In this document: positions 8,369 through 30,747 of the stretch, piece after piece
How positions within the stretch are numbered: position 1 is the first letter of the stretch
Layout of the letters: each line of letters starts with the position of its first letter
Sequence record: MN794232.1
Direction: 5' to 3' (one strand)
Length of the DNA stretch: 64,000 nt
The notes under the pieces: model-generated
What the model saw: only the letters and a program-made list of their open reading frames with translations
Told to the model about the DNA's origin: nothing
Database searches by the model: none
Translations under genes and position numbers: made by a program

Positions 8369-8587
8369 ATGAGCTACAATGAAGAACACGAGAACCGAAT
8401 CAACGAGCTTGAGAACAAGGTTTCAAAGCTTGAGTCGATAATTGAAAATCTGGTTGAGTCAATGACTTCGAACAGCGAAGCTATTATCGAACATATTGCA
8501 TCACTTGAGACCGAGAGAGATTCGATTCTTGCATCATATGATGACAAACTTAATGAGATCGTGACCAAATATGAACCCAAGCAATAG
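8369..8587 (+). CDS. small coiled-coil protein
   Basis: heptad pattern INELENKVSKLESII. Confidence 0.7.
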   Translation: MSYNEEHENRINELENKVSKLESIIENLVESMTSNSEAIIEHIASLETERDSILASYDDKLNEIVTKYEPKQ

Positions 8588-9425
8588 AGAAATGACTGGG
8601 TTCAATAACATTTCTCGCACCGGTAAGTTGAAATTACAAGCCGATGCAGACAACGTCCGTGCCATGTGTATGGACGTTGTTCGTTTATTGAACTCCAAAA
8701 ATATACCATCTAACTTCGACATCAATCACAATGACGGTGGTAACATCGGCGTGCATGAATGGGTGTCACAAATCCGCTTCATTCACTTGAAATACATGAA
8801 CGTTAATTTCCAAACGAAGATTTTCAAGCATGCCTATCATAACACTGAAAACGTCGTTGACTATTTTGACACGTTCAAACATTCTGACAAATATCATCTT
8901 TCAGCGAAGCCTCGATTCTTAGAATATGAAAACGTCGTATTTCTATGCGGATCGAATGTACTTGAAGTGGCAATTGACTTTGACAAGATTGATGCGTTGG
9001 TCGAACAATATCCCGATTTAGTGATCAAACCTCATCCGATTACGACGCTGTATTACATCAATATGCTTAAAACTCGATATGGATCGAATCGCGTGCTTTC
9101 TCAGAAGATCAGCGGTGTTGATGTTCTTAAATCTGCTAAACGTGTTTGGCTGCCTTCAACGTCTGAGTTCTGGTTTAGTGCCTTGAACTACGACAAAGAA
9201 ATCGGGTTTATCTCTAAAGATGGTTTCTGTGGAACGTACACGTCAATCATCAACGCAGTATGGGAATTGCATGAAGAAACCGGTGAGCCATTGAAAGATA
9301 TTGTGAATAAAATTATCTCGTCACCTTACTCAGGTCTGTATGGTAGTATGGCAGACTTTGAAGAGCATCACGAGAAATACTGTAATGTGATTCTAGAACT
9401 AGGGGGTAATTTCGATAATGTATGA
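8571..9425 (+). CDS. GT-B fold glycosyltransferase-like (capsule-synthesis/KpsS-like C-terminus)
   Basis: LVIKPHP and AKRVWLPSTSEFWFSALNYDKEI resemble KxHP and D-V-x-T-x-x-S-T/S-x-x-x-E-A-L motifs. Confidence 0.5.
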   Translation: MNPSNREMTGFNNISRTGKLKLQADADNVRAMCMDVVRLLNSKNIPSNFDINHNDGGNIGVHEWVSQIRFIHLKYMNVNFQTKIFKHAYHNTENVVDYFDTFKHSDKYHLSAKPRFLEYENVVFLCGSNVLEVAIDFDKIDALVEQYPDLVIKPHPITTLYYINMLKTRYGSNRVLSQKISGVDVLKSAKRVWLPSTSEFWFSALNYDKEIGFISKDGFCGTYTSIINAVWELHEETGEPLKDIVNKIISSPYSGLYGSMADFEEHHEKYCNVILELGGNFDNV

Positions 9426-10050
9426 TTATGTAATTCACACTTCGATTAGTGACAAAAGTCAGTTAAACCAACTAGCAATGTTTGTCGGGTCTTTCATCGA
9501 GACGCACAAAAAAGGTCGCGTGGTCTGCGTGACTGATCTTGAACTTGATTTCACGATGCCTCGATTGTCATTTGAGAAAAAACTACCCGAAGAGTACGTT
9601 TTCATTTCAGTTGACAATCTATTTTTGCAAAAAACGTACGGTGTGGTTAGCTACATTGATAGCGGCACTTGGCGATGTACTTGGCAAAAGAATGATCATG
9701 ATGAGTTCGTTATTAAAAAGCATGGCGAAAGAAGCGGGTTGATTCACCCTGATATTGCAATTGCAAATTACAATGTTTCTAGACATGGCGATCTCGACAT
9801 GTATTACAACGCGCTTCGTTATATTGAGAACGCCATCACGATCAACTGCAAAGACTTTGCTCCTGCTGCTGAGAATAAAATCAACAGCTTTTACACGCTT
9901 GTATTTCCATGGGAGATTTATTTTCACGTCATGATCACTTACCAAGAGTATATTGATTCTGAATACGTTGAGCGAGTTCGCGCTAACTGTCATAAGTTCG
10001 CACACTCAGTTTATTACAGAAAATCGGGGTTGTTGCGTGATGGGTTATGA
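9418..10050 (+). CDS. hypothetical, possibly GT-A-like transferase
   Basis: N-terminal beta-alpha-beta pattern (YVIHTSISD...VVCVTD); weak. Confidence 0.35.
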   Translation: MYDYVIHTSISDKSQLNQLAMFVGSFIETHKKGRVVCVTDLELDFTMPRLSFEKKLPEEYVFISVDNLFLQKTYGVVSYIDSGTWRCTWQKNDHDEFVIKKHGERSGLIHPDIAIANYNVSRHGDLDMYYNALRYIENAITINCKDFAPAAENKINSFYTLVFPWEIYFHVMITYQEYIDSEYVERVRANCHKFAHSVYYRKSGLLRDGL

Positions 10051-10723
10051 TGAGATAATTTTAGTATCTGGGCTTGATAGCTTAGTTCTATACGAATTTC
10101 TTGAACGAAAGCCACACCCTGTTTACTTTAAATGGGGATTTGCTATCGACGAACTTGAAATGGCTTCTTTGCCTGAAGAAACAACTATCATAGAAATGCC
10201 AGAGATTTTGCATTTGAAACATGATCCGTATGAGTTCAAGACGCCACGAAATCCCGATTTGATTGGTCGGAATACGTTGATGTTTAACTCAGTTTTTCAT
10301 GCATTCAGACCGAACGTAATTTATCGCGGGATGTTGAAGGGTGATGATTTCTATTACGACGCATCGCCTACGCATTCAGATGAAATCGCAGCTATGTGGT
10401 CGAAAATGCTGAATAAAGATTGTCGAATTGAACAACCGTTCAAAGACAAAACGAAACGTGACATAATGCAAATGGCGGTTGAATACGGGATTGACGCGAA
10501 TTCATTGCAGCATTGTTACAATCGAGAACATAACTGTGGTCGATGTAGCAAGTGTGTGGATGCACATGTTAATTCTATGTACACCGACAACCCAGACATC
10601 ATGTGGCTGAAACGAATAGTTAATGACTCGGGTATGGCATCATTGGCTAATCACATGTTTGGTGTTGATACAGTTGACAGAATAAAGGAATTTCTAGATG
10701 AATTTGATCGAACAGACTGCTGA
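10040..10723 (+). CDS. QueC-like PP-loop adenylyltransferase family protein
   Basis: VSGLDS PP-loop, RNTLM, PFKDKTKRDI, C..C-G-R-C-S-K-C zinc motif. Confidence 0.7.
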   Translation: MGYDEIILVSGLDSLVLYEFLERKPHPVYFKWGFAIDELEMASLPEETTIIEMPEILHLKHDPYEFKTPRNPDLIGRNTLMFNSVFHAFRPNVIYRGMLKGDDFYYDASPTHSDEIAAMWSKMLNKDCRIEQPFKDKTKRDIMQMAVEYGIDANSLQHCYNREHNCGRCSKCVDAHVNSMYTDNPDIMWLKRIVNDSGMASLANHMFGVDTVDRIKEFLDEFDRTDC

Positions 10724-11591
10724 TAAATTCGAGCATAGTTACCGAGAAGACGTTCAAGGTGTACAGTGGTATTTCGGTAGTCGAACGCATGATTTTTATC
10801 TGTATGGAATAGACTCTCTTATTGATAAAGTCAAAGACTGTGATTTTATTGAAATCAAGCATGTTCAAGAGGGTACGCTGGTTAAACGAGGCGAAGCTGC
10901 GGTCACGGTTACGATTACAGATCATAGTCGTATCGCATATGGGAACATGATTGAAACATTGTTGTACAATGAGTTGTGGTATTCGAGCACGGTCGGTACG
11001 ATTTTACACCGTTGTCTTGATGTGTTGCATGAAAACGGCTATGACGCTCGTTCAGCATACCCTCAAATCGGACGGGCGAGTTCAACGCCAGAACAGTCAG
11101 CTAAAGCAAGGGATGTGTTCGCACGTATATTTTATCAATCGTCGAATGAGAAAATACCCGTTGCGATGCACAGTGATATTCTAATCAACGGCGAGGAATA
11201 TTGCATGGAACATTATAACGGCATCATGATTGATACTTTCGATAAGCAAGCTTGCATTGACTTGATCAACAAGAAAGACTTTCGAGGGACTGTGATGGTT
11301 GACTCTCAGCCAATAATTGAAACAATTGAGAGAGTTCTAGCTGAAACAAAATGCTTTGTTGCACAAGCTGAAAGTGTTACACTCGATGAGTGGATAGAGA
11401 TAGTGCGACATTTTAAAGGCAATAAGCGAATTTTCTACGGGATTGGTAGCTTTGCATTTAGCAATATATCACGAGACACATTTGGTTTGATTTACAAAGT
11501 GTGTGCAGTTAAGAAAAACGACAACTGGATCGGAGTTTCAAAGATGACGACAGGTAAACAAACATCGGCTGGTTATAAGGTTATAGGTTAG
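10698..11591 (+). CDS. divergent NAPRTase/NAMPT-family phosphoribosyltransferase
   Basis: VQEGTLV, IETLL...LWYSSTVGT, MHS, IDTFD, VDS, GIGS, RDTFGLIYK parallel nadV motifs; short (297 aa). Confidence 0.65.
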   Translation: MNLIEQTADKFEHSYREDVQGVQWYFGSRTHDFYLYGIDSLIDKVKDCDFIEIKHVQEGTLVKRGEAAVTVTITDHSRIAYGNMIETLLYNELWYSSTVGTILHRCLDVLHENGYDARSAYPQIGRASSTPEQSAKARDVFARIFYQSSNEKIPVAMHSDILINGEEYCMEHYNGIMIDTFDKQACIDLINKKDFRGTVMVDSQPIIETIERVLAETKCFVAQAESVTLDEWIEIVRHFKGNKRIFYGIGSFAFSNISRDTFGLIYKVCAVKKNDNWIGVSKMTTGKQTSAGYKVIG

Positions 11592-11593
11592 TT

Positions 11594-12583
11594 ATGAATT
11601 ATTGTATAGCGCCGTTTACATCGCCGTCTATTACACCAGACGGTTTTAAAATTTGCAGCATGCCAGGTCAGAAAGTATACCCTGATATTTCATTCTGGAA
11701 TAGTGATGAAGTGATCAAGATTCGCGAACAGATTATCGCTGGTGAAATTCCTGAATCGTGCAAGGCATGTCGTAGTATGCGTGACGGGTTGATTGTGTCA
11801 AAAGAAAAACCAACTGATACTCATGTTGACTTGAATTTCAAAGCTCTTTACATTGCGCGGTCGAACAAGTGTGAATATGCTTGTGAAATGTGCAGTTCAT
11901 CAATCTCACATAGCTATGACAAGAAATACAATGACGGTAAGTTGGGGATTATTGAGAATGACTTTGATGTTATTCCGTATCTGCACGAAACACAAGCCGT
12001 TGCTATTTCGGGCGGGAACCCTGTCATTGACAAAAAGGTTGCAGAGATTCTTGAGAATCTAGACCCTGACGTGGTAGAACGTTTCATTATTACTTCAAAT
12101 GGGACAGTCTTTCCAGACAGATTCTTGAATGCAATTAAGAGATTGAAATGTGACGCGACTTTGATATTCTCTATGGACGGACCGAAAGAGTTTAATGAAG
12201 TGGTTCGATCTGGTGCGAAGCAAGAGAGAATCTATCGCACCATTAATCGAGTTCTTGACGAGATTGAAGATTACCCAAACTTGCATGTGGCAATTGAGTA
12301 TACTTTCACGAATAAGTCAATTCATCACTACGTTGATTTGTATGATGAAATGCTCTTCGAGATCAACCCGAAGCATTTGAAAAACAACTCAGTTAAAGTG
12401 ATTGCGAATATGTGTACATACCCGCATCACCTTAGCGTTACAACTGTTCCCAAAACCGTCATTGATGACATATTGTTCAATCAGTTGCCGTATTTGAGAC
12501 AGCAACCCAGCCCATTGTCAAATCAATTCAAACTTGGCTATGATAAGTTTTTGACTCAGTATCACAACAGCGTGATTATGTGA
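11594..12583 (+). CDS. radical SAM protein with N-terminal SPASM/twitch-like Cys domain
   Basis: CEYACEMC; ISGGNP; N-terminal CIAPF...C...CKAC. Confidence 0.85.
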   Translation: MNYCIAPFTSPSITPDGFKICSMPGQKVYPDISFWNSDEVIKIREQIIAGEIPESCKACRSMRDGLIVSKEKPTDTHVDLNFKALYIARSNKCEYACEMCSSSISHSYDKKYNDGKLGIIENDFDVIPYLHETQAVAISGGNPVIDKKVAEILENLDPDVVERFIITSNGTVFPDRFLNAIKRLKCDATLIFSMDGPKEFNEVVRSGAKQERIYRTINRVLDEIEDYPNLHVAIEYTFTNKSIHHYVDLYDEMLFEINPKHLKNNSVKVIANMCTYPHHLSVTTVPKTVIDDILFNQLPYLRQQPSPLSNQFKLGYDKFLTQYHNSVIM

Positions 12584-13700
12584 TCAGATCATACGCTTTG
12601 ATATGTGAGTAAAACTCTGGACACGCAGACGATAAATTAGTTTTCGTCTTCGTGTCTATTCTTTTGTTAAGAACAAAGAATTCAGGGTTGAATTTACAAA
12701 CACTGTGTTCCAGAGTAAGACATTCAGCAACGTGCTTAAATGGTCTAGCCAAATCCTCACGCCCATCTTTTAAATACGCTTCTTCTTTCACTTTGAATCT
12801 TGATAATAGCTGGTCTCGAAATGCAACTGGAATGTTGTAAATTGAGTATGGATTATCAGGCTCACCGACGACATGCACAGACAAACGTACACGTTTACCA
12901 TCATAAAGCGAATCAAAATCTGAAACCAATGTTTCAAGATGTTCAAGAGTCACGTTTGACACGGTCGCAGTGATAACTACATCAAAGTGTTGCTTGATGA
13001 CTTCAATGTTTGATTTGACTTTTTTGATGTCTGCAAACAATCGAATATAATCTTGGTATTCTCGTAGACCGTCGATTGATACGAACACCGTTGATGCATT
13101 AGCTTCTTTAAGCGATTTGATGAGATCTGAGCCATCGGCTAACACTAGTGATGAGCCATTCGTGAAAATATTCACTGCGGCTTTAATGTCGCCTACGTTG
13201 CGAAGAACTTCAGGAGCATTTGACGAGCGGGTAATTTCACCGCCTAGAATTGTCAATGACGAAAGTCCTTTGCTGATTGTGTTGATTGTCGTACTCAAAT
13301 CATTGAATCGAGTACTTGAATCTTCTTCATTGAACAATCTAGCCTTCAAGTCTGATAATTTGCTGTAGCAGTAACGACAAGCTTGATTACATTCATTACT
13401 AGGGAATACTTGTAGCCAGCGAACTGAATCAGCGGGCATAATAGGTGAAACTTCAGAATCGTGTTCTGTTAGACGCTGTGGGTCATTATCAGTAATGCAC
13501 ATTTGACATGCCTTTGACAGCTTGCTCATGTCGTGGTTTAGCATTGCTTCACGATAAGCGACAAGCTTTTCATCATTCCAAGCGTCTGCTAGTGTTTTTT
13601 CATCAGTAAACCATTCATAATCAGCCGAACAGCAAAACGTAATTTGATTGTTTGCTCGTGTGATGAACTGCTTGAACGGCATATAACATAGTGGTTTCAT
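12576..13700 (-). CDS. radical SAM protein with N-terminal SPASM/twitch-like Cys domain
   Basis: CNQACRYC; LGGE; CYMPF...CC...CQMC. Confidence 0.85.
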   Translation of the reverse strand: MKPLCYMPFKQFITRANNQITFCCSADYEWFTDEKTLADAWNDEKLVAYREAMLNHDMSKLSKACQMCITDNDPQRLTEHDSEVSPIMPADSVRWLQVFPSNECNQACRYCYSKLSDLKARLFNEEDSSTRFNDLSTTINTISKGLSSLTILGGEITRSSNAPEVLRNVGDIKAAVNIFTNGSSLVLADGSDLIKSLKEANASTVFVSIDGLREYQDYIRLFADIKKVKSNIEVIKQHFDVVITATVSNVTLEHLETLVSDFDSLYDGKRVRLSVHVVGEPDNPYSIYNIPVAFRDQLLSRFKVKEEAYLKDGREDLARPFKHVAECLTLEHSVCKFNPEFFVLNKRIDTKTKTNLSSACPEFYSHIKAYDLIT

Positions 13701-13710
13701 GTTTCTGTCC

Positions 13711-14283
13711 TTAGTTAAAAATGCTACTTGTATATATAGCAGTCTTCAGGGCATTGAAATGATCGTCAACTCTATTCACGTGTATGCATTCAATGTCAAA
13801 TCTTTCTTGGATTTCTCGGATGTTGTCTAGCGAGTCGTCGATGAAGTATTTCACCTCATGCAGTTCACACAGCTTCTCGACATACTTTGCCTTCGAGTCG
13901 AAGTACTCAATCGAAATCACCTCACTTATCATCCCTGGGAATAACGCATTTAGATTATACACGCGATTTGACCATGAAGTTCTACTCATGCTGAACTTGG
14001 TTAGTGCAATGATGTTATATCGGTCTGAGAGTTCGCGTAACGCATCGTAAGCGTCTTCATATGCGGGTATGTACTTTGCACACTCATGTTCATTGTATGC
14101 GCCTATAAGCTTTCCTAGTTGCATGTCACTCACGTTAATAAATAAAGAGCGTGCATCGGTATCAGTATTTGAACCGTTGATATTCAAATTATCAAGCATG
14201 CCTAATTGCATCATGAAGAATGGCAAGTTGGCTTTCCAGTTAAGCAAAACCCCGTCTACATCTATGATGATCGTCTTTTTCAT
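13711..14283 (-). CDS. HAD-family phosphatase (5'-nucleotidase-like, T4 30.2-like)
   Basis: DVDGVL motif I; FIDDS motif IV. Confidence 0.8.
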   Translation of the reverse strand: MKKTIIIDVDGVLLNWKANLPFFMMQLGMLDNLNINGSNTDTDARSLFINVSDMQLGKLIGAYNEHECAKYIPAYEDAYDALRELSDRYNIIALTKFSMSRTSWSNRVYNLNALFPGMISEVISIEYFDSKAKYVEKLCELHEVKYFIDDSLDNIREIQERFDIECIHVNRVDDHFNALKTAIYTSSIFN

Positions 14284-14416
14284 TACTACCTCGAAAAAAA
14301 TTAAAATTTTTCGAAAAAAAGTATTGACACTTAGTTTCGTTCATGTAATACTTATCTCAACTTAACGAAACAAGTTAAACAAACAAGACAACATTTAATC
14401 AAAAAAGGAAATACAC

Positions 14417-14653
14417 ATGAAAAACTTCAAATCAATCGCAACTGCACTTCTTCTAACTATGACTTTCTCTGCTGGTGCTTTCGCACACGGCTCAGGCGGT
14501 ACGCTAGGTGGTAACCTTGGCATCGAAATGTGCAAAATCGGAGCAATCAACTGCGGCTTCCCTAAACAAGAAGTTAAAGTTGAAAAAGAAGCACCAAAAG
14601 CTGAAAAGGCTGAGGTGAAAGAAGTTAAGCTGGCAACTGATCTGACAGCTTAA
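14417..14653 (+). CDS. small secreted protein
   Basis: signal peptide ending AFA; own promoter TTGACA..TAATAC at about 14324-14352. Confidence 0.7.
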   Translation: MKNFKSIATALLLTMTFSAGAFAHGSGGTLGGNLGIEMCKIGAINCGFPKQEVKVEKEAPKAEKAEVKEVKLATDLTA

Positions 14654-14752
14654 TTGAAATGTGCAGATTCGTCTGCACATTTTGTTTAATAACGACTCAT
14701 CGAGACATATACTAAAGTCTCACACAATCAAGCATAAAATGGGAGCCATACA

Positions 14753-16246
14753 ATGCTAAATCTTAATCAAAATATCGCAATCGCAACTGACAGCTACAAA
14801 GTTTCACACTGGTCTCAATTCCCTCGTGGTCTAGAGTACAGCCAATATTACGTCGAAAGCCGGGGTGGTAAGTTCGACAAAATTATGGTCGATGGTATGG
14901 CATACATGTGTCGTATTCTCGAAAAAGGTGTTTCGATGAACGATGTCAAGCGTGCGAAACGTCTGTTCAAAAAGCACTTCGGTTCTGAAGTCTTCAATGA
15001 CAAGGGTTGGGACATCATCGTTAACGAACTGAAAGGCAAACTGCCTATTAAGATTCGTGCGGTCAAAGAAGGTACTGTAGTACCAGTTAAACACCCTATC
15101 TTGACGATTGAGAACACTGATCCACGTTTTGGTTGGCTGCCTGGCTATCTTGAAACGTTCATCTTGCGTGCTCTTTGGTACCCGACGACTGTAGCAACGA
15201 TCTCGTTCGAAGTGAAGAAAATCATTCGCCAATTCATGAAGAAAACGGTTGATGATGAACGCATTGCAGAACAAGAGCCATTCAAACTTCACGACTTTGG
15301 TTCTCGTGGTGTATCAAGTGGCGAATCTGCGGCTATCGGCGGCTCTGCTCACTTGAAAAACTTCTTGGGTACTGACACTGTAGAAGCACTTGTTGCAGTT
15401 GAAGAACTTTACGCTGAAGATGTTGAAGACTTCATTGCAGGATTCTCAATCCCTGCACGTGAACACTCAACAACTACAATCTACAAAGAAGCTGGTGAAG
15501 ACCAAGCATTCTTGAACTCTATTGAGCAATGGGGTGCTGCATTATACGCTTGTGTAATGGACAGCTACGACTACGAAGCAGCAATGAATCGTGTCTCGAC
15601 TGGTCGCTTCAAAGAGCTAATCATCAGCAAAGGCGGTACGTTTGTTGCTCGTCCTGACTCTGGTGTGCCTGTAGATGTAGTAATGAAAGGTCTTGAGATT
15701 CTTGGTAAAAACGTTGGTTATACAATCAACAGCAAGGGTTACAAAGTATTGCACCCTAGCTACCGTATCATTCAAGGTGACGGCGTGAACATCGAAGAAA
15801 TTCGTCGAATCTTGTCTTACATGGAAAGTAAAGGCTGGTCGGCAGAAAATATTGCATTCGGTATGGGTGGCGGGTTGCTTCAACAACTTGACCGTGATAC
15901 TCAACGCTTTGCAATGAAAATGTCAGCGGCAATCATCAACGGCGAATACGTTAGCGTGTTCAAAATGCCGAAGACTGATCCGACAAAAGCATCAAAAGCA
16001 GGTTTCTTGGATTTGATTGCAGTTGATGCAGACAATCCGAACCCAGCGGCTCGTGGTTACGTGACGTTCTCTTCTGAAGATTACGACAATCGCGTTCACC
16101 CGAAAAGCGTGATGCAGACAATCTTCGAAGACGGTGTAACAGTTGCTGACTTCTCACTCGAAGAAGCTCGTAAACTGTCTGACGTACAAGCTGATTTCCT
16201 GAACGAAGGTGAATGGAAAATCGCGAAAAAGATTCAAACTGCGTAA
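14753..16246 (+). CDS. nadV: nicotinamide phosphoribosyltransferase
   Basis: TDSYKVSHW, LHDFGSRG, PAREHS, RPDSG, IIQGDG, FGMGGGLLQ...RDT motifs. Confidence 0.95.
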   Translation: MLNLNQNIAIATDSYKVSHWSQFPRGLEYSQYYVESRGGKFDKIMVDGMAYMCRILEKGVSMNDVKRAKRLFKKHFGSEVFNDKGWDIIVNELKGKLPIKIRAVKEGTVVPVKHPILTIENTDPRFGWLPGYLETFILRALWYPTTVATISFEVKKIIRQFMKKTVDDERIAEQEPFKLHDFGSRGVSSGESAAIGGSAHLKNFLGTDTVEALVAVEELYAEDVEDFIAGFSIPAREHSTTTIYKEAGEDQAFLNSIEQWGAALYACVMDSYDYEAAMNRVSTGRFKELIISKGGTFVARPDSGVPVDVVMKGLEILGKNVGYTINSKGYKVLHPSYRIIQGDGVNIEEIRRILSYMESKGWSAENIAFGMGGGLLQQLDRDTQRFAMKMSAAIINGEYVSVFKMPKTDPTKASKAGFLDLIAVDADNPNPAARGYVTFSSEDYDNRVHPKSVMQTIFEDGVTVADFSLEEARKLSDVQADFLNEGEWKIAKKIQTA

Positions 16247-16279
16247 AACGTGACATTGATCACTAAAAATCGTAAATTT

Positions 16280-16312
16280 AGGGTTGCTTCGGCAGCCCTT
16301 TTTTCGTATTAT
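16280..16312 (+). promoter_or_regulatory. terminator hairpin overlapping early promoter
   Basis: AGGGTTGC-TTCG-GCAGCCCT-T-run; TTGCTT-17-TATTAT. Confidence 0.65.
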
Positions 16313-16353
16313 AGCTACATCGAAACGAGATACGAAAACAAAGAGAGAACATT

Positions 16354-16680
16354 ATGCAACTAACTTCTAAAATGACTAAAGCTCAAAAAACTAAAGTTGT
16401 TGAAGGTTTCAACTTCGAGCGTGAAACAGGTCAAAGTCAATACAAATACCGCAACGGTACTTACAACATGGAAGGCGGTGATGTTGCACGTCGATTCAAT
16501 CTAATCTCTACTATCGTGACTGGTAAGCCAGCGATTATTCCTGAAGCGACAGTTGCTGATTTTGATCGCATTGTTCTTATGCAAGCAATGACTGATCAGT
16601 TCTTAACAATGAGTGCTGGTAAAGCTTCTCTTGAAGAATCTAACGAATTTGGTAAAAAAGTGCTTGCACACTTCGCTTAA
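16354..16680 (+). CDS. hypothetical early protein
   Basis: AGAGAACATTATG. Confidence 0.7.
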   Translation: MQLTSKMTKAQKTKVVEGFNFERETGQSQYKYRNGTYNMEGGDVARRFNLISTIVTGKPAIIPEATVADFDRIVLMQAMTDQFLTMSAGKASLEESNEFGKKVLAHFA

Positions 16681-16721
16681 TTCAATTAGAATACTTACAT
16701 CAACTGAGAAGAGAGAACATT

Positions 16722-16964
16722 ATGAAAGCAACTATCCCACAGCTTAAAAAGAAAATCAATTCACTTGCTGACCGATACGGTTACGCTTTTGACAAAAACG
16801 CACCGTACTACGTAAACGACGGTCGCATCAAAGCAATCGAAGCTGCCATCATTACTGTCAAAGAAGACGGTGAAGCGAATCCAACTCGTCGCTACGAAAT
16901 CAGCGAAAAGCAGCTTGTATCATTGAACAATTGGGTTCGTGATTTGAAACACAAATATCTGTGA
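16722..16964 (+). CDS. hypothetical early protein
   Basis: AGAGAACATTATG. Confidence 0.7.
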   Translation: MKATIPQLKKKINSLADRYGYAFDKNAPYYVNDGRIKAIEAAIITVKEDGEANPTRRYEISEKQLVSLNNWVRDLKHKYL

Positions 16965-16970
16965 GGTAGT

Positions 16971-17210
16971 ATGTACGCAATACAAGCAACTAGTCATTTC
17001 GTTCAATTCGTTCTAAAGAGCGTGAGCGTAAATGGCTTCCCGAAATACGTGCCAATGTATACGTTTAATTTGGGAATCATAACAACATTCGCAACTCTTG
17101 AAGAATGTCAAAAGTTCATCGACGAGTACGATCCCAACCCCGACGCATGTCTGCCATGGCGTGCATATAAACTACACGATCTTGAAATCGCTCAACTGGA
17201 GACAAAATAA
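16971..17210 (+). CDS. hypothetical protein
   Basis: GAGG RBS. Confidence 0.6.
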   Translation: MYAIQATSHFVQFVLKSVSVNGFPKYVPMYTFNLGIITTFATLEECQKFIDEYDPNPDACLPWRAYKLHDLEIAQLETK

Positions 17211-18478
17211 TGGGTTCATTTAACACTACTTGCGCAATCACTCGTACACCAATTCAAGAAGGCGGTCTTGCGCGTGTCTTTTTCTTAGAAATGGACGCAT
17301 TTGCAACAAACTATTACGGTCGTCAAGGTCTGTTTAAGAACATCATGATGGGATGTGGTTGCTACCCATGGGATAATTTCAAGATCATCGGTTACCCGCT
17401 GCTCGGCAAATATGCCGATTACAACAATTACGAGTTTGAAGATGCAGATATGGCTAATATGACGCTGGCTGCAATCAACAAACGATACGTACCAAATCGA
17501 GTAGCTGAAGGCAAGACGCTTGAAGATTACAATGAATATCATGATTACATGGAAATCGACGAGATTTCAGACATGAGTCAGCTTCAAGACATGGAACACA
17601 GTGGTTCGCTTCGAGTTAAAGGCGCGCATGGTAATGTAACTGCGGTTGTTAAAATGGCAATGCATGAAGAAGTGTACCAAATGATGCTTGAAGGTAACGT
17701 GACTGAGGGTTGGGGTGATGATGCGAAGACATATTCATTTGCCGACGATTTGAAACGTCTCACAGATAAGTATAGTGGTTCAGTATCAGGTTTTGATGCA
17801 TTAACCGAGCAACAACAGAAGCGAATGAATGACATGCGTGATGAGCTTTACGCTAAGGCTGACGCGGGCGAAATCAATGAACGCACTGGCGAACCATATA
17901 CTCGTGAACATGCTGACAAGAGCTTCGAACAAATGGTTGAATGGCTTGCTGAAGACCGTATTGAGCTTGGCGGCGAACGCGCTGAATGGTTTGCACATCA
18001 ATCTCATAGCCGAGATATGGCAGATCTTAAAGACAATCAAGAACTAGTTCACAAACTAGCTGAAGCAGTCGTAGGTGCAAAATGGTGTGCTCGATGGATG
18101 ATGCGTAACAACTACGAATTTGCACCTGTGATGACATGCGGTCAAGATTACGATACTGCTTCTCATGCGTCGCGTCTTCGTAAGCTTGCTGACATCATCG
18201 AATCGAAGAAAAACAAATATCACTACGAAGAGCACGTTGAACTTGATGTAGTTCGTTCTGAGCGCGTTGAACTGTCTCTAAGTAATCTGAAAGAGCGTTT
18301 TGCTGATTGGTACGATGAAGGTGATGAAGAATACCAAGATTTACTGTCAGTGATTGAAAGTGTAAAAGAACAATCAAGCTTTGTTTACGGTGATGGTTCT
18401 ATTTTCGATAAATTCATTGAAGCATACGACGTTCTACGTGATGTTGAAGAAAATACACAAATTCATTTCAAAAAGTAG
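17210..18478 (+). CDS. hypothetical protein
   Basis: 422-aa ORF, MGSFNTTCAIT start. Confidence 0.75.
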   Translation: MGSFNTTCAITRTPIQEGGLARVFFLEMDAFATNYYGRQGLFKNIMMGCGCYPWDNFKIIGYPLLGKYADYNNYEFEDADMANMTLAAINKRYVPNRVAEGKTLEDYNEYHDYMEIDEISDMSQLQDMEHSGSLRVKGAHGNVTAVVKMAMHEEVYQMMLEGNVTEGWGDDAKTYSFADDLKRLTDKYSGSVSGFDALTEQQQKRMNDMRDELYAKADAGEINERTGEPYTREHADKSFEQMVEWLAEDRIELGGERAEWFAHQSHSRDMADLKDNQELVHKLAEAVVGAKWCARWMMRNNYEFAPVMTCGQDYDTASHASRLRKLADIIESKKNKYHYEEHVELDVVRSERVELSLSNLKERFADWYDEGDEEYQDLLSVIESVKEQSSFVYGDGSIFDKFIEAYDVLRDVEENTQIHFKK

Positions 18479-19575: not shown

Positions 19576-20628
19576 TCAATTTACCATTTTGATTTGAATT
19601 TGATTGTCCATGTAAGCCATTTTCTTTTCAAATTCAACATCATATTCTGGTCGATGTTCGTATTCGACTGAAAGCATTTGCTTCAGACAACGGTACAATT
19701 CCGACTTGTAATACCCTTCTTTCATTCCCTTCATCTGTTCATATTGCTTTTTCATAGCAGCTTTGATTATCTTCGGGTCCATGAATTTGATTGACATTTC
19801 TCGCGGTGCTTTTACTGTGCCAAAGTCAACAAACACCTGAGCCTTTTCAGCTACTTGAATGAAGTCATAAATCGTGTCATAACTCATTCGACTTAGCGTG
19901 TGGTGCATACAAACATGTTTGCTATGTTCTTTTAGCAACGGTACATTTGCAAGCATCAAGTCGTGGTCGATGTTCTGACGAATGTATTCGTTGCGCTCTT
20001 TTCCGCCGTCACATGAAATTGTAAACACTAGACGATGTTTGTACTTTTTACATATGGCTAGAATCTTCTTCGCAAGTGGCGTATGCAACACAGTACCATT
20101 TGTCAGGATGTAAACTTCCGCGTTTGTTTCTTCCATGACTTCAGTCAGAACTTCGACTGTTCTCTTGTCCATGAACGGTTCGCCGCCGTATAGCACAACA
20201 GTTTCAACACCCTTCGGGATGCTGAAATCGAGTTGTGTGTAATCGTAGTGGTCGTCAATGTCATACAAGTCCATGTATGTTTTGCTATTCTTGCCATAGC
20301 ACATTCGACACGCTAGGTTACATTTGTTTGACATCAATATTTGAATTGTTCTAGGATGCTCTTCGAGTGCTTCATATTCGAAGTACTTCTGATCAGACAA
20401 TTCGCCATAACTCATACATTCTTTGCAGTATTCTGGTAAAGTGTCATACTCAAACATTTTGGCACGATGTTCATTGATGATGTCACTGTGCCACCAGTCT
20501 TCAACGTTCGGGAATGGTTCACTTAGCTGAGAACAGCAAATGTGATACCCATCTGGTTTTGCGTCACGTGTATTAAAGGGAGAGCCACAAAGTGGTCTCT
20601 TCCCGTCTTTAAATCCGAATTTATCCAT
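19576..20628 (-). CDS. radical SAM protein with N-terminal SPASM/twitch-like Cys domain
   Basis: CNLACRMC; YGGEP; CGSPF...CC...CKEC. Confidence 0.85.
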   Translation of the reverse strand: MDKFGFKDGKRPLCGSPFNTRDAKPDGYHICCSQLSEPFPNVEDWWHSDIINEHRAKMFEYDTLPEYCKECMSYGELSDQKYFEYEALEEHPRTIQILMSNKCNLACRMCYGKNSKTYMDLYDIDDHYDYTQLDFSIPKGVETVVLYGGEPFMDKRTVEVLTEVMEETNAEVYILTNGTVLHTPLAKKILAICKKYKHRLVFTISCDGGKERNEYIRQNIDHDLMLANVPLLKEHSKHVCMHHTLSRMSYDTIYDFIQVAEKAQVFVDFGTVKAPREMSIKFMDPKIIKAAMKKQYEQMKGMKEGYYKSELYRCLKQMLSVEYEHRPEYDVEFEKKMAYMDNQIQIKMVN

Positions 20629-20900
20629 TAATCTATCTCATCGAGAAGTGATTGAAATTCTTCGTCGCGTTCAGCGTCGATTGTGCCAGTCATCAACTCT
20701 GTTAGAGTCTTCAACGACTTGATCTCTGGTGGTTGAGGGCGTAGATCTTCGAGAATGTGAATGATTGACTCGGCTGGGAGATCGTGATTTACGATCTCAT
20801 CTGGCAGGTGGTGTTTGTAAACGCAGTCGTCGCCCCAATCAATAACTACTGCATGTTCCCATTTGTCGATTTCTAGTATTTTAAAATTTGGTTTCATCAT
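20628..20900 (-). CDS. hypothetical protein
   Basis: ORF coupled to both neighbours; start MMKPNF. Confidence 0.6.
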   Translation of the reverse strand: MMKPNFKILEIDKWEHAVVIDWGDDCVYKHHLPDEIVNHDLPAESIIHILEDLRPQPPEIKSLKTLTELMTGTIDAERDEEFQSLLDEID

Positions 20901-21898
20901 AAGCCCCAGAGTTCTTTCCAATGTGTTTTAGCATCTTGTCGATACTTCTCAATGTCAAATTTTTGATATTTCTGTTCGATTGCATCATCAATGACGCGAA
21001 TCAACGTATCATTGTTTATATCAGCACGAATCACTGGGAAAATAAAATCCCTTGTGTAAGGTGCGTCATGCTGAACAATACAAGGTATGTACTGACATGC
21101 TTCTAATAACGCATATGGCATAATCTCGATTCGAGACATGTGAAGCAAAACTTTACTTTTCATCATATGTGCTATGACTCGCTCACGCCGTTGACAAGTT
21201 TCGACTATACAATCAACCCCACTCGGGATTCTTATTGATTCGGTTGTGAATAGACGAATTTTAAGACCGCTGTATGCAAGCGCGTTTAGCATTTCGGGTA
21301 TCTGCTTACGTTTGTATGCACCTGACACGATAATCACGTCAGACGCTTCAGCAGCGTCAATATCAGCTTGTGATATAGACGGAAGCTCAAATGGTTCAAA
21401 TGCAGTCACATGTTTGCCACCAATTACTTCTCGACCCCATTGTGCAATCCCGTTCGATTGAGCAATGTTAGTGACTAATGACGTTGACATCATGTGTCGC
21501 CATTGAGGTAAATTGTAAATTTGATGAATGTCCATGTATTCGCGATATGAATCTGGTACTATCAAGTCACCGAAATGATGTTGGTTGTAACAACGGCGCT
21601 TCGCTTCGATACATGCGCGGAGTGCTTCATATGAATGCGTGTAGATAATCGCTTCGCTATCAATCGCGTTGATAACCATTGCGTTTGCCTTGTAGTCTTT
21701 ATAAGACCGTTTCGTTAAAATGAAGTCACACTCGAAATCCCATTTACTCACGTGTGGACACGATTCGTCTCCGAGTACAATAACTTTGACATCACAGTTT
21801 AGTGATTGCATTAAACGAACGTGATCTTGAATGAATGTGTAAATACCGCCGCCAATTCCCAACATAAAGTCAGTTACTACGTAGCGAACTTTTTTCAT
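20897..21898 (-). CDS. GT4-family glycosyltransferase
   Basis: N-terminal GIGGG; C-terminal SRIEIMPYALLEA (E-x7-E). Confidence 0.7.
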   Translation of the reverse strand: MKKVRYVVTDFMLGIGGGIYTFIQDHVRLMQSLNCDVKVIVLGDESCPHVSKWDFECDFILTKRSYKDYKANAMVINAIDSEAIIYTHSYEALRACIEAKRRCYNQHHFGDLIVPDSYREYMDIHQIYNLPQWRHMMSTSLVTNIAQSNGIAQWGREVIGGKHVTAFEPFELPSISQADIDAAEASDVIIVSGAYKRKQIPEMLNALAYSGLKIRLFTTESIRIPSGVDCIVETCQRRERVIAHMMKSKVLLHMSRIEIMPYALLEACQYIPCIVQHDAPYTRDFIFPVIRADINNDTLIRVIDDAIEQKYQKFDIEKYRQDAKTHWKELWGL

Positions 21899-29865: not shown

Positions 29866-30747
29866 ATGCAGGTAAGATGGACAGAAATGTTTTACAGCAT
29901 TCAAGGCGAAGGGAAATACACTGGTCAAGCTAGTTTATTCTTTCGCTTCTGGGGTTGTAACTTAGAATGTCACGGCTTCGGGCAAGAAGATCCGACGAAT
30001 AAAGATACATGGGTATTAGACTTCAAAGACTACGACCCGAAAGCTAACAACGTGACTTCAGTCGAAGATCTGCCTGTATGGACTCGTGGATGTGACTCTT
30101 CTTACACGTGGGCTAAAAAGTATGCTCATCTTGCTTCAAAGTCTGAAGTTGCAGACGTATGCGAAGCAATGCTTGAGAAACTGCCTAATCGAGTTTGGGG
30201 AGATATTCATTGGGTAATTACAGGTGGTGAGCCGATGATGAATCAAGCTCAAATCATCGAAATGATGAATTACTTCATCAAAATTGACAATTATCCAAAA
30301 CATGTCACGATTGAAACTAATGGTACGCGAGAACTCAAGCCAGAATTTGCAGAGCGTTGGGCGCTAATTCAGTGGAATACGCATCGTAATGTTCACTTGA
30401 GTTTCAGCGTGTCAGTTAAGTTGTACAACGTAACGGGCGAAGTGCATGAAAAAGCAATCAAGCCAAAAGTTGTCAACAAGTATGCACGCATCGGAGAAGT
30501 CTGGCTCAAGCCAGTCGTCGTAGACAAGGAAGCGTGTTGGGACGAGCTTGATGCTGTGATCGCACAGTTCAAAGCAGAACGCAACTTACACAACGTTCCA
30601 GTGTATATCATGCCATGTGGTGCTACTCAAGAAGAGCAAGAGCAAGATGGTTATATGGCGTCAATCGCAGGGAAAGCATTGGCGCGTGGTTACAACGTTT
30701 CTGTACGAACACACGTATGGATTTGGGGTAACGCGGTGGGCACGTAA
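29866..30747 (+). CDS. queE: 7-carboxy-7-deazaguanine synthase (QueE-like radical SAM)
   Basis: FYSIQGEG, FWGCNLEC...CDS, ITGGEP, IETNG, SVRTH. Confidence 0.8.
   Translation: MQVRWTEMFYSIQGEGKYTGQASLFFRFWGCNLECHGFGQEDPTNKDTWVLDFKDYDPKANNVTSVEDLPVWTRGCDSSYTWAKKYAHLASKSEVADVCEAMLEKLPNRVWGDIHWVITGGEPMMNQAQIIEMMNYFIKIDNYPKHVTIETNGTRELKPEFAERWALIQWNTHRNVHLSFSVSVKLYNVTGEVHEKAIKPKVVNKYARIGEVWLKPVVVDKEACWDELDAVIAQFKAERNLHNVPVYIMPCGATQEEQEQDGYMASIAGKALARGYNVSVRTHVWIWGNAVGT

Follow-up and report, generated by a model that had tools for sequence, protein, structure and literature searches.

A 64,000-nucleotide stretch of sequence record MN794232.1 (the window) carries two overlapping genes, one for a QueC-like protein and one for a miniature phosphoribosyltransferase (PRTase) with the fold of nicotinamide phosphoribosyltransferase (NAMPT). 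Over bases 8500-16300, the window matches Vibrio phage VH1_2019 at 100% identity and the T4-like vibriophage KVP40 at 99.1%. We found that the two genes occur together in unrelated phages, that the QueC-like protein has a variant loop that goes with the pairing, and that the NAMPT-like protein appears to have kept one half of its active site and rebuilt the other. We suggest, with a probability of about 45%, that the two enzymes together make a non-canonical ribonucleotide, most likely that of a 7-carboxy-7-deazaguanine (CDG)-type base. The catalytic activities are predicted from conserved residues, and the identity of the substrates, the order of the steps, and the use of the product are predictions too.

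The two open reading frames (ORFs) overlap by 26 nt on the same (+) strand (Table 1), and an AAGGA Shine-Dalgarno sequence lies inside the QueC-like gene, 8 nt before the ATG of the NAMPT-like gene. Their KVP40 counterparts are KVP40.0258, annotated as 'QueC-like', and KVP40.0259, a hypothetical protein with a match to PF04095. The annotation of KVP40.0258 is one codon longer than an ORF starting at the ATG at 10040, so that its start would be expected at a GTG at window position 10037. In family scans the QueC-like protein matched Pfam QueC (4e-9), PHROG 1550 (2e-50), and the PADLOC model of Cap9-type QueC (5e-13). Its sole sequence match in the PDB was Cap9 from type IV CBASS (cyclic oligonucleotide-based antiphage signaling system) (9nto_B, E = 4e-5). 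An AlphaFold2 (AF2) model of the protein (predicted local distance difference test score, pLDDT, 84.9) resembles QueC (2pg3 and 3bl5) as well as Cap9 (9nto_B).

The NAMPT-like protein matched Pfam NAPRTase (1.6e-6) and PHROG 448 (4e-37). Its AF2 model (pLDDT 90.9) superimposes on human and mouse NAMPT with a template modeling (TM) score of ~0.8 at 18% identity, and the ESM Atlas model agrees with the NAMPT fold. The best PDB sequence match was Namat (9w5x, E = 1.6e-5), in an alignment that covers only residues 51-113 and 242-269. The NAMPT_N domain (PF18127) had no match in the 297-aa protein, and the score against NCBIfam NF006629 was 63.5 bits versus a cut-off of 405 bits. A preliminary description of the window had reported a QueC-fold protein with a VSGLDS PP-loop overlapping a truncated PRTase gene. 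The ORFs, family scans, and AF2 models bear out the overlap and both folds. The PRTase is indeed shortened, but it is not a simple truncation: the protein has a normal N-terminal motif start, several internal deletions, and a loss of ~70 C-terminal residues. Longer NAMPT-like forms, of 397-404 aa, are present in other phages.

We found that the two genes travel together. Searches by tblastn with either protein returned an identical set of 35 phage records, all of large vibriophages. The genes are also adjacent or overlapping in unrelated phages, namely on two SU10-like contigs (L011 and L021), a sipho-like contig (L013), and two metagenomic large-phage contigs (L008 and L017) that carry the same gene cassette as the window. 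On L011, from an SU10-like podophage, the pair directly follows a gene for a tail-repeat protein, and its QueC-like gene overlaps the NAMPT-like one, which encodes 289 aa (35% identity, E = 1e-59). In the sipho-like phage (L013/L014) the QueC-like gene is followed by a 251-aa RlmN/Cfr-like radical S-adenosylmethionine (SAM) gene and then by a 404-aa NAMPT-like gene, and the block is located between tail-fiber genes and lysis genes. The QueC-like protein of L021, P0024, is the nearest outgroup in our tree (see below); the next gene encodes 397 aa and matches the NAMPT-like profile (3e-51). On L008 the QueC-like domain and radical SAM enzyme 1 of the cassette form a single fusion protein of 558 aa (P0008). 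The two genes of the pair are separated there by a gene matching phrog_274, a family whose KVP40 member has a Pfam note for a 2-oxoglutarate-Fe(II) oxygenase. Only the QueC-like and NAMPT-like genes are common to all of these contexts. The glycosyltransferase (GT)-like, 210-aa, N-terminal twitch (N-twitch) radical SAM, and HAD genes of the cassette are additions in large phages only. The pairing is not due to chance, since both proteins find the same 35 phage records and the genes are adjacent in unrelated phage contigs.

Relative to phage QD01, the NAMPT-like gene had a ratio of nonsynonymous to synonymous change (dN/dS) of 0.08, and its neighbors in the cassette had values of 0.05-0.11, where the ratio could be computed (dS was saturated). 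As judged from these sequence comparisons, the pair behaves like a single functional unit under purifying selection.

The pair is rare. A HMMER search of 1.84 billion representatives with the QueC-like protein gave only five clusters below 1e-10, and a search of IMG/VR returned only KVP40. In JGI metagenomes and GTDB genomes, motif scans based on the NAMPT-like alignment turned up no relatives, and a word search with a long-form NAMPT-like protein found only the protein itself. Over the ~20 kb that we read along the L021 and L014 contigs, there was no FolE, QueD, QueE, or DpdA. Elsewhere on the contig that includes L021 (L024, 11752-20585) are genes for a ParE toxin, a plasmid-type replicase, and a 4618-aa polyvalent protein with PBECR1, helicase, and LPD39 domains. 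These genes suggest that the SU10-like element carrying P0024 and its NAMPT-like partner is a phage-plasmid.

We compared the QueC-like proteins with canonical QueC, using the motif definitions of Libby et al. 2026. The canonical signature consists of SGGxDS, YxQxHxxE, VPxRN, YPDC, and C(x)8CxxCxxC, and the substrate-motif residues Y35, R99, and Y131 are essential (Libby et al. 2026). The YxQ motif is essential in QueC and is retained in Cap9. In our tree, seven NAMPT-paired QueC-like proteins formed a single clade (SH-like approximate likelihood ratio test, SH-aLRT, 97). Cap9-like proteins formed a separate clade (SH-aLRT 97), and canonical QueC was likewise apart. The NAMPT-paired clade adjoins phage QueCs that are located in ordinary FolE/QueD/QueE clusters.

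The PP-loop reads [VLMI]SG[LIF]DS in all seven members of the clade and ISGIDS in the sister protein P0024. In every NAMPT-paired QueC-like protein, therefore, SGGxDS is replaced by xSGxDS, and the alignment indicates that this change is a conserved signature of the pairing rather than decay. P0024 retains YGQ, GR, and YxD, which are substrate motifs in QueC and Cap9. Because it keeps YGQ despite its variant loop, the loop variant need not mean a loss of activity. Non-SGG loops are found in the phage QueC-like proteins P0021, P0024, and P0027 (SNGLDS, ISGIDS, and LSGMDS).

Members of the NAMPT-paired clade retain D13, S14, R77 (the Arg of VPxRN), the Tyr and the acid of YPDC, P133, K139 (the lysine of PF(x)4K), and the four cysteines (Cys4). 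The site of YxQ is E/D-x-E in the clade, with an invariant Glu; it is intact in P0024. In the window protein, YxQxH is absent and the region reads FKWGFAIDELE, with the invariant E40 at the Gln position. VPxRN is reduced to GRN, and YPDC has become YYDA (YxES in relatives). The protein scored 28.8 bits against TIGR00364, for which the cut-off is 150.3 bits, and 47.5 bits against the PADLOC Cap9-type model, compared with 150-222 bits for Cap9-like proteins.

We aligned nine members of the NAMPT-like family through the window's own NadV. Equivalent human NAMPT residues are given by mapping through the same NadV. Ten residues are invariant across the family: R29, H158, D179, D202, G250, R259, D260, K267, K282, and K287. 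H158 aligns with the catalytic, autophosphorylated His247 of NAMPT, D202 with D313, R259 and D260 with R392 and D393, and K267, K282, and K287 with K400, K415, and K423. R126, at the position of R196, is Arg in all members except one, which has Lys. At the position of D354, all members but one have an acid, Glu or Asp.

The positions of the nicotinamide pocket are different. Y18 and F193 are the stacking residues of NAMPT, and D219 is the residue that reads the amide. The Y18 position is Asp or His in large phages (Asp in the window protein), and Tyr is retained in the three proteins of small phages. No member has kept F193, which is replaced by Gln, Lys, or His (Gln in the window protein). 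The D219 position is Ser or variable and is Asp in no member, and the R311 position is hydrophobic. We interpret these residues to mean that the ribose-phosphate/pyrophosphate half of the site is kept and that the nicotinamide half is rebuilt and more polar. The retained ribose-phosphate residues and the lost nicotinamide pocket fit the novel nucleotide proposed in the preliminary description; a role related to nicotinamide adenine dinucleotide (NAD) is a rival to that part of its proposal (see below).

The pair is not the phage's own machinery for making preQ0 or for salvaging NAD, because a canonical queC, a probable queE, and an intact nadV are also present. In KVP40, canonical QueC (Pfam E = 5e-55) is encoded ~60 kb upstream of the pair, beside folE, queD, dpdA2, and a queF-type gene. 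The VH1_2019 counterpart is queC_2, at 73924-74640 of that genome. An intact nadV lies 3.2 kb downstream of the pair and a probable queE (KVP40.0284) ~19 kb downstream, in agreement with the ~3 kb and ~18 kb that had been noted earlier. The pair is thus neither the phage's queC nor its nadV, in line with the earlier view, and the QueC-like gene is not the only queC, which the preliminary description had named as a finding that would speak against its proposal. We rejected the reading that the QueC-like gene is the phage's queC. The canonical 7-deazaguanine genes also mean that the phage has its own supply of CDG. At least 45 vibriophage records have a canonical queC, and at least 12 of these lack the pair, including nt-1, VH7D, phi-ST2, and ValKK3.

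In the VH1_2019 record, the QueC-like gene is labeled queC_1 and a neighboring radical SAM gene queE_1. These labels are probably automatic misannotations. For KVP40-like genomes, our results are a caution against calling the two genes of the pair queC or nadV.

The route that we propose would run as follows. The two genes would be the conserved core of a phage-specific, two-enzyme pathway. The NAMPT-fold enzyme would still bind phosphoribosyl pyrophosphate (PRPP) or a related activated ribose phosphate, and its His, Asp, Arg, and Lys machinery would form an N-glycosidic bond to a base that is not nicotinamide but another aromatic carboxylate or carboxamide. Activation of the carboxylate of this base, with a nucleotide triphosphate, would fall to the QueC-like enzyme. 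Characterized zinc-ribbon enzymes of the QueC type all activate the carboxylate of CDG, and the acceptors of activated CDG include ammonia (QueC), amino acids (RoyL), and a protein N-terminus (Cap9 and QatC). TubE is a CDG-specific, PRPP-dependent transferase that requires the carboxylate, and it is a type I enzyme. We infer that the N9-C8-C7(carboxyl) geometry of a 7-deazaguanine mimics the N1-C2-C3(carboxamide) geometry of nicotinamide, as the two share the same 1,3 relation. Given this shared geometry, a NAMPT pocket that had become wider and more polar could plausibly accept a 7-deazaguanine base. Further tailoring of the product in the large Vibrio phages may be the work of radical SAM enzymes, a HAD phosphatase, and other gene products. 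The cassettes of large phages contain HAD phosphatase, radical SAM, oxygenase-like, and kinase-like genes that resemble nucleoside tailoring steps. A narrower version of the proposal is that a NAMPT-fold PRTase has been re-tooled in phages to place ribose phosphate on a 7-carboxy-, 7-amido-, or 7-cyano-7-deazaguanine base, with a dedicated QueC-like ligase. We regard this version as possible, if doubtful.

Several lines of evidence suggest that a route to a non-canonical ribonucleotide is the function of the pair: the confident folds, the pairing itself, the P0008 fusion, the retained residues, the substrate motifs of P0024, the place of the clade beside QueCs of the phage preQ0 pathway, the low dN/dS, the precedents of TubE and RoyL, and the supply of CDG. 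Other observations weigh against it. We know of no type II PRTase (the fold of NAMPT, NAPRT, and QPRT) that acts on a purine-like base; all use pyridines. The Vibrio-phage QueC-like proteins lack YxQ (now ExE) and have an altered PP-loop, so that CDG binding and ATP use are not assured. Genes for FolE, QueD, and QueE were absent from the ~20 kb of the small-phage contigs, and those phages would thus rely on host CDG. Finally, conservation fails at R311 and, in one member, at the acid that corresponds to D354.

These weak points make an NAD-related role in salvage or counter-defense a serious rival, although we consider it unlikely. The NAMPT-like enzyme would phosphoribosylate nicotinic acid or a close pyridine carboxylate, and the QueC-like protein would amidate it, in the manner of NadE or a nicotinamide mononucleotide (NMN) synthetase. 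Alternatively, the QueC-like protein would take the part that Adps plays for Namat and activate the ribosyl donor. In both cases, NAD+ would be rebuilt after its destruction by host defense. The pyridine substrates that, as far as we know, are common to the characterized type II PRTases speak for such a role, as do LarE and NadE, PP-loop enzymes that act on nicotinate nucleotides. The pair is 3 kb from nadV, amid NAD genes in large phages, and two-gene NAD reconstitution operons with a NAMPT homolog exist (NARP1), with Namat the best PDB sequence match of the NAMPT-like protein. The absence of Asp from the amide-recognizing position in every member also fits. In contrast, the Vibrio-phage substitutions of Y18 by Asp and F193 by Gln, and the loss of F193 from the whole family, count against this role. 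The QueC-like protein is a zinc-ribbon QueC, not of the NadE or LarE type, and its sister P0024 keeps CDG-type motifs. The large phages already have NadV, and L017 a NatV-like gene as well, which would make the pair redundant, and no PRPP-synthetase-like Adps partner is adjacent to the pair in any context. Modification of a macromolecule is a further, quite unlikely alternative. The QueC-like enzyme would join a carboxylated base to a protein amine, for instance in a tail-fiber or other virion protein, or to a nucleic acid, and the NAMPT-like protein would supply, bind, or transfer the base, as does the TGT-like Cap10 in type IV CBASS. Cap9 is the best PDB match of the QueC-like protein, the PADLOC Cap9-type model outscores Pfam QueC, protein deazaguanylation by the QueC family is established, and on L011, L013, and L021 the pair is within a tail or tail-fiber module. 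Nonetheless, the QueC-like protein is outside the Cap9-like clade and scores far below its members, there is no CD-NTase or QatB partner, and the retained PRPP-type residues favor small-molecule catalysis. Moreover, the region around the Vibrio-phage pair is of early type, and there is no T4-type late promoter in the vicinity.

The preliminary description had proposed that the pair makes an activated donor for adjacent transferases. This would make the cassette at 8369-14283, with its GT-like and radical SAM enzymes, the functional unit. We consider this very unlikely. Five genes (8571-12583) do overlap or abut, the block is conserved among large phages and missing as a block from VH7D, and P0008 joins the QueC-like domain to radical SAM enzyme 1. 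However, the GT-like and N-twitch radical SAM genes do not accompany the pair in three unrelated lineages of small phages: L011 and L021 have none of these neighbors, and L013 has only the unrelated RlmN/Cfr-like radical SAM gene. The assignment of the 284-aa protein as a transferase is also sub-threshold (GT52, E = 1e-3; 18.8 versus 26.1 bits). It is most improbable that the two proteins are decaying or non-catalytic paralogs, such as a regulatory or scaffold pair. The degenerate PP-loop, the lost nicotinamide pocket, the strongly shortened PRTase, the five clusters among 1.84 billion representatives, and the empty motif scans of metagenomes and genomes are what decay might produce. Against this, neither reading frame is broken in the 35 genomes or in distant phages, dN/dS lies below 0.1 with dS saturated, both AF2 models are confident, and the variant loop, the catalytic His, Asp, Arg, and Lys, and Cys4 are all conserved.

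A two-enzyme nucleotide route would have partial parallels among known systems. The two proteins fall outside canonical QueC, Cap9, and NAMPT/NadV, and probably outside Namat, and they are predicted to act like a QueC-family ligase and a PRPP transferase. The QueC-like protein shares with canonical QueC (TIGR00364; PF06508 cluster 1) the fold, Cys4, the VPxRN Arg, the YPDC Tyr and acid, and the PF(x)4K lysine. It differs in its VSGLDS loop, in the replacement of YxQxHxxE (with Glu at the Gln position), in its separate clade, and in having a PRTase partner rather than queD or queE. Like Cap9, which is its best match in the PDB by sequence and by TM score normalized to the target, it has a minimal QueC architecture, and like Cap9 with the TGT-like Cap10, it has a partner from a family that forms N-glycosidic bonds. 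Unlike Cap9 and QatC, it is phage-encoded, with no QatA, QatB, or QatD nearby and no CD-NTase in any context of the pair that we examined (the window, L011, L013, L021, and the large-phage contigs). It has not kept the Cap9 motifs LxSGGxDS, Y/FxQ(x)5E, and H(x)4YxDCxxxF.

The NAMPT-like protein resembles NAMPT/NadV in its type II PRTase fold, catalytic His, phosphate/ribose Arg, Lys, and Asp. It differs in length (297 versus ~490 aa), with subdomains and the C-terminus deleted, and in the replacement of F193, D219, R311, and, in large phages, Y18. The Namat system (NARP1) is also a two-gene phage operon with an ATP-using partner, but that partner is the PRPP-synthetase-like Adps and not a QueC-like protein. 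Namat is marked by an adenine-binding selectivity clamp as well as by the Adps gene next to it. The Streptomyces deazapurine pathways (toyocamycin, ToyM/ToyH/ToyI; tubercidin, TubE; roseomycin, RoyL) similarly combine a QueC-family enzyme, a PRPP transferase acting on a carboxylated 7-deazaguanine, a phosphatase, and tailoring. They use type I PRTases (PF00156), with FolE/QueD/QueE alongside, in actinomycete genomes, whereas the PRTase in the window is type II and phage-borne. Our literature search found no paper that links a QueC-like with a NAMPT-like protein. A 2026 survey of the QueC family, which covers its ten largest clusters only, does not mention a PRTase-linked or vibriophage group, and a paper on the pan-genome of vibriophages names the canonical deazaguanine cluster and NARP2 alone.

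The pair is part of an accessory cassette, because some records have a canonical queC without the pair and because VH7D lacks the whole stretch that matches window 8369-14653. The cassette is conserved as a block in KVP40-like phages and in QD01, D484, F86, L008, and L017. Five of its genes are chained as one tightly packed and probably translationally coupled unit, since the 284-aa and 210-aa genes upstream overlap their neighbors and the gene for radical SAM enzyme 1 abuts the pair, beginning 2 nt past the NAMPT-like stop. Relative to QD01, the cassette genes are saturated at synonymous sites, with 69-83% protein identity, compared with a dS of 0.39 and 96% protein identity for nadV. The cassette seems to have a history different from that of its flank, through exchange or faster evolution. 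No homolog of the 284-aa protein was found beside the pair in small phages, and the 266-aa gene upstream of the L013 pair is not related to the 284-aa or 210-aa protein. A PDB sequence search with the radical SAM enzymes and the 284-aa protein gave generic matches or none. Near the cassette, sigma-70-like and terminator-like sites were at chance level, and there was no T4-type late promoter. Among sequencing runs deposited as RNA, none contained this stretch.

Table 1. Features of the window in and around the QueC-like/NAMPT-like gene pair (aa, amino acids).
Feature	Position	Strand	Remarks
72-aa ORF	8369..8587	+	First cassette gene; homologs precede the cassette in L008 and L017; absent in VH7D
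284-aa protein, sub-threshold GT52-like match	8571..9425	+	Overlaps next gene; conserved in L008, L017, and QD01
210-aa protein	9418..10050	+	11 nt overlap with QueC-like gene
QueC-like protein, 227 aa	10040..10723	+	KVP40.0258 homolog; Cap9-like minimal QueC fold with C-terminal helical extension
Variant PP-loop VSGLDS, aa 9-14	10064..10081	+	Family motif is SGGxDS
Intact Cys4 zinc motif C-x6-CGxCxxC, aa 159-172	10514..10555	+	QueC family; invariant across the clade
Miniature NAMPT-fold type II PRTase, 297 aa	10698..11591	+	Identical to KVP40.0259
VAMHS motif with His158	11160..11174	+	Invariant in 9/9 members; aligned to AREHS of window NadV
Radical SAM enzyme 1 (N-terminal twitch type)	11594..12583	+	Fused to QueC-like domain in P0008
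Radical SAM enzyme 2 (N-terminal twitch type)	12576..13700	-
HAD-family phosphatase-like protein (T4 30.2-like)	13711..14283	-	Accompanies the cassette in large phages; not seen at the VH7D locus
Intact nadV (true NAMPT)	14753..16246	+	Pfam NAMPT_N and NAPRTase; context, outside the pair
Probable queE (KVP40.0284), 293-aa radical SAM ORF	29866..30747	+	Canonical 7-deazaguanine pathway; context

In VH7D the cassette site, just upstream of nadV, is occupied by a PagP-like gene with a lipid A acylation annotation (L020, 8462-8965). On L008, the region 3' of the cassette (14266-17579) encodes a 458-aa fructosamine-kinase/APH-like protein, a NADAR-domain protein, and an acyl-carrier-type PP-binding protein. 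The window has a second accessory island at 19576-21898 (- strand). One of its genes is for a third radical SAM protein of the N-twitch type, which has 350 aa and shares 28% identity with radical SAM enzyme 1. The island also has a 97-aa ORF and a gene for a 333-aa protein whose KVP40 annotation notes a match to the glycosyltransferase family PF00534. The VH7D counterpart of the island contains three small genes only.

QueC-family proteins act outside queuosine synthesis, in protein deazaguanylation in type IV CBASS and Qat, as the preliminary description had stated and the literature establishes, and in amino-acid ligation in roseomycin. NAMPT homologs are central to the conflict between phages and bacteria over NAD+. 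The conserved, phage-only pairing of members of the two families, in which the loop is a signature and the base pocket is rebuilt, suggests that phage infection yields a nucleotide not yet described. The pair is also a small, testable system: two soluble proteins, PRPP, ATP, and a panel of bases. If the re-tooling for a 7-deazaguanine base is true, the NAMPT-like protein would have the first purine-like substrate for type II PRTases. It would also mean a nucleotide-level phage route to 7-deazaguanines, which could provide DpdA-independent precursors for nucleic-acid modification or a toyocamycin-like antimetabolite or signal. The finding thus bears on how far phage 7-deazaguanine chemistry may extend beyond DpdA-type insertion into DNA.

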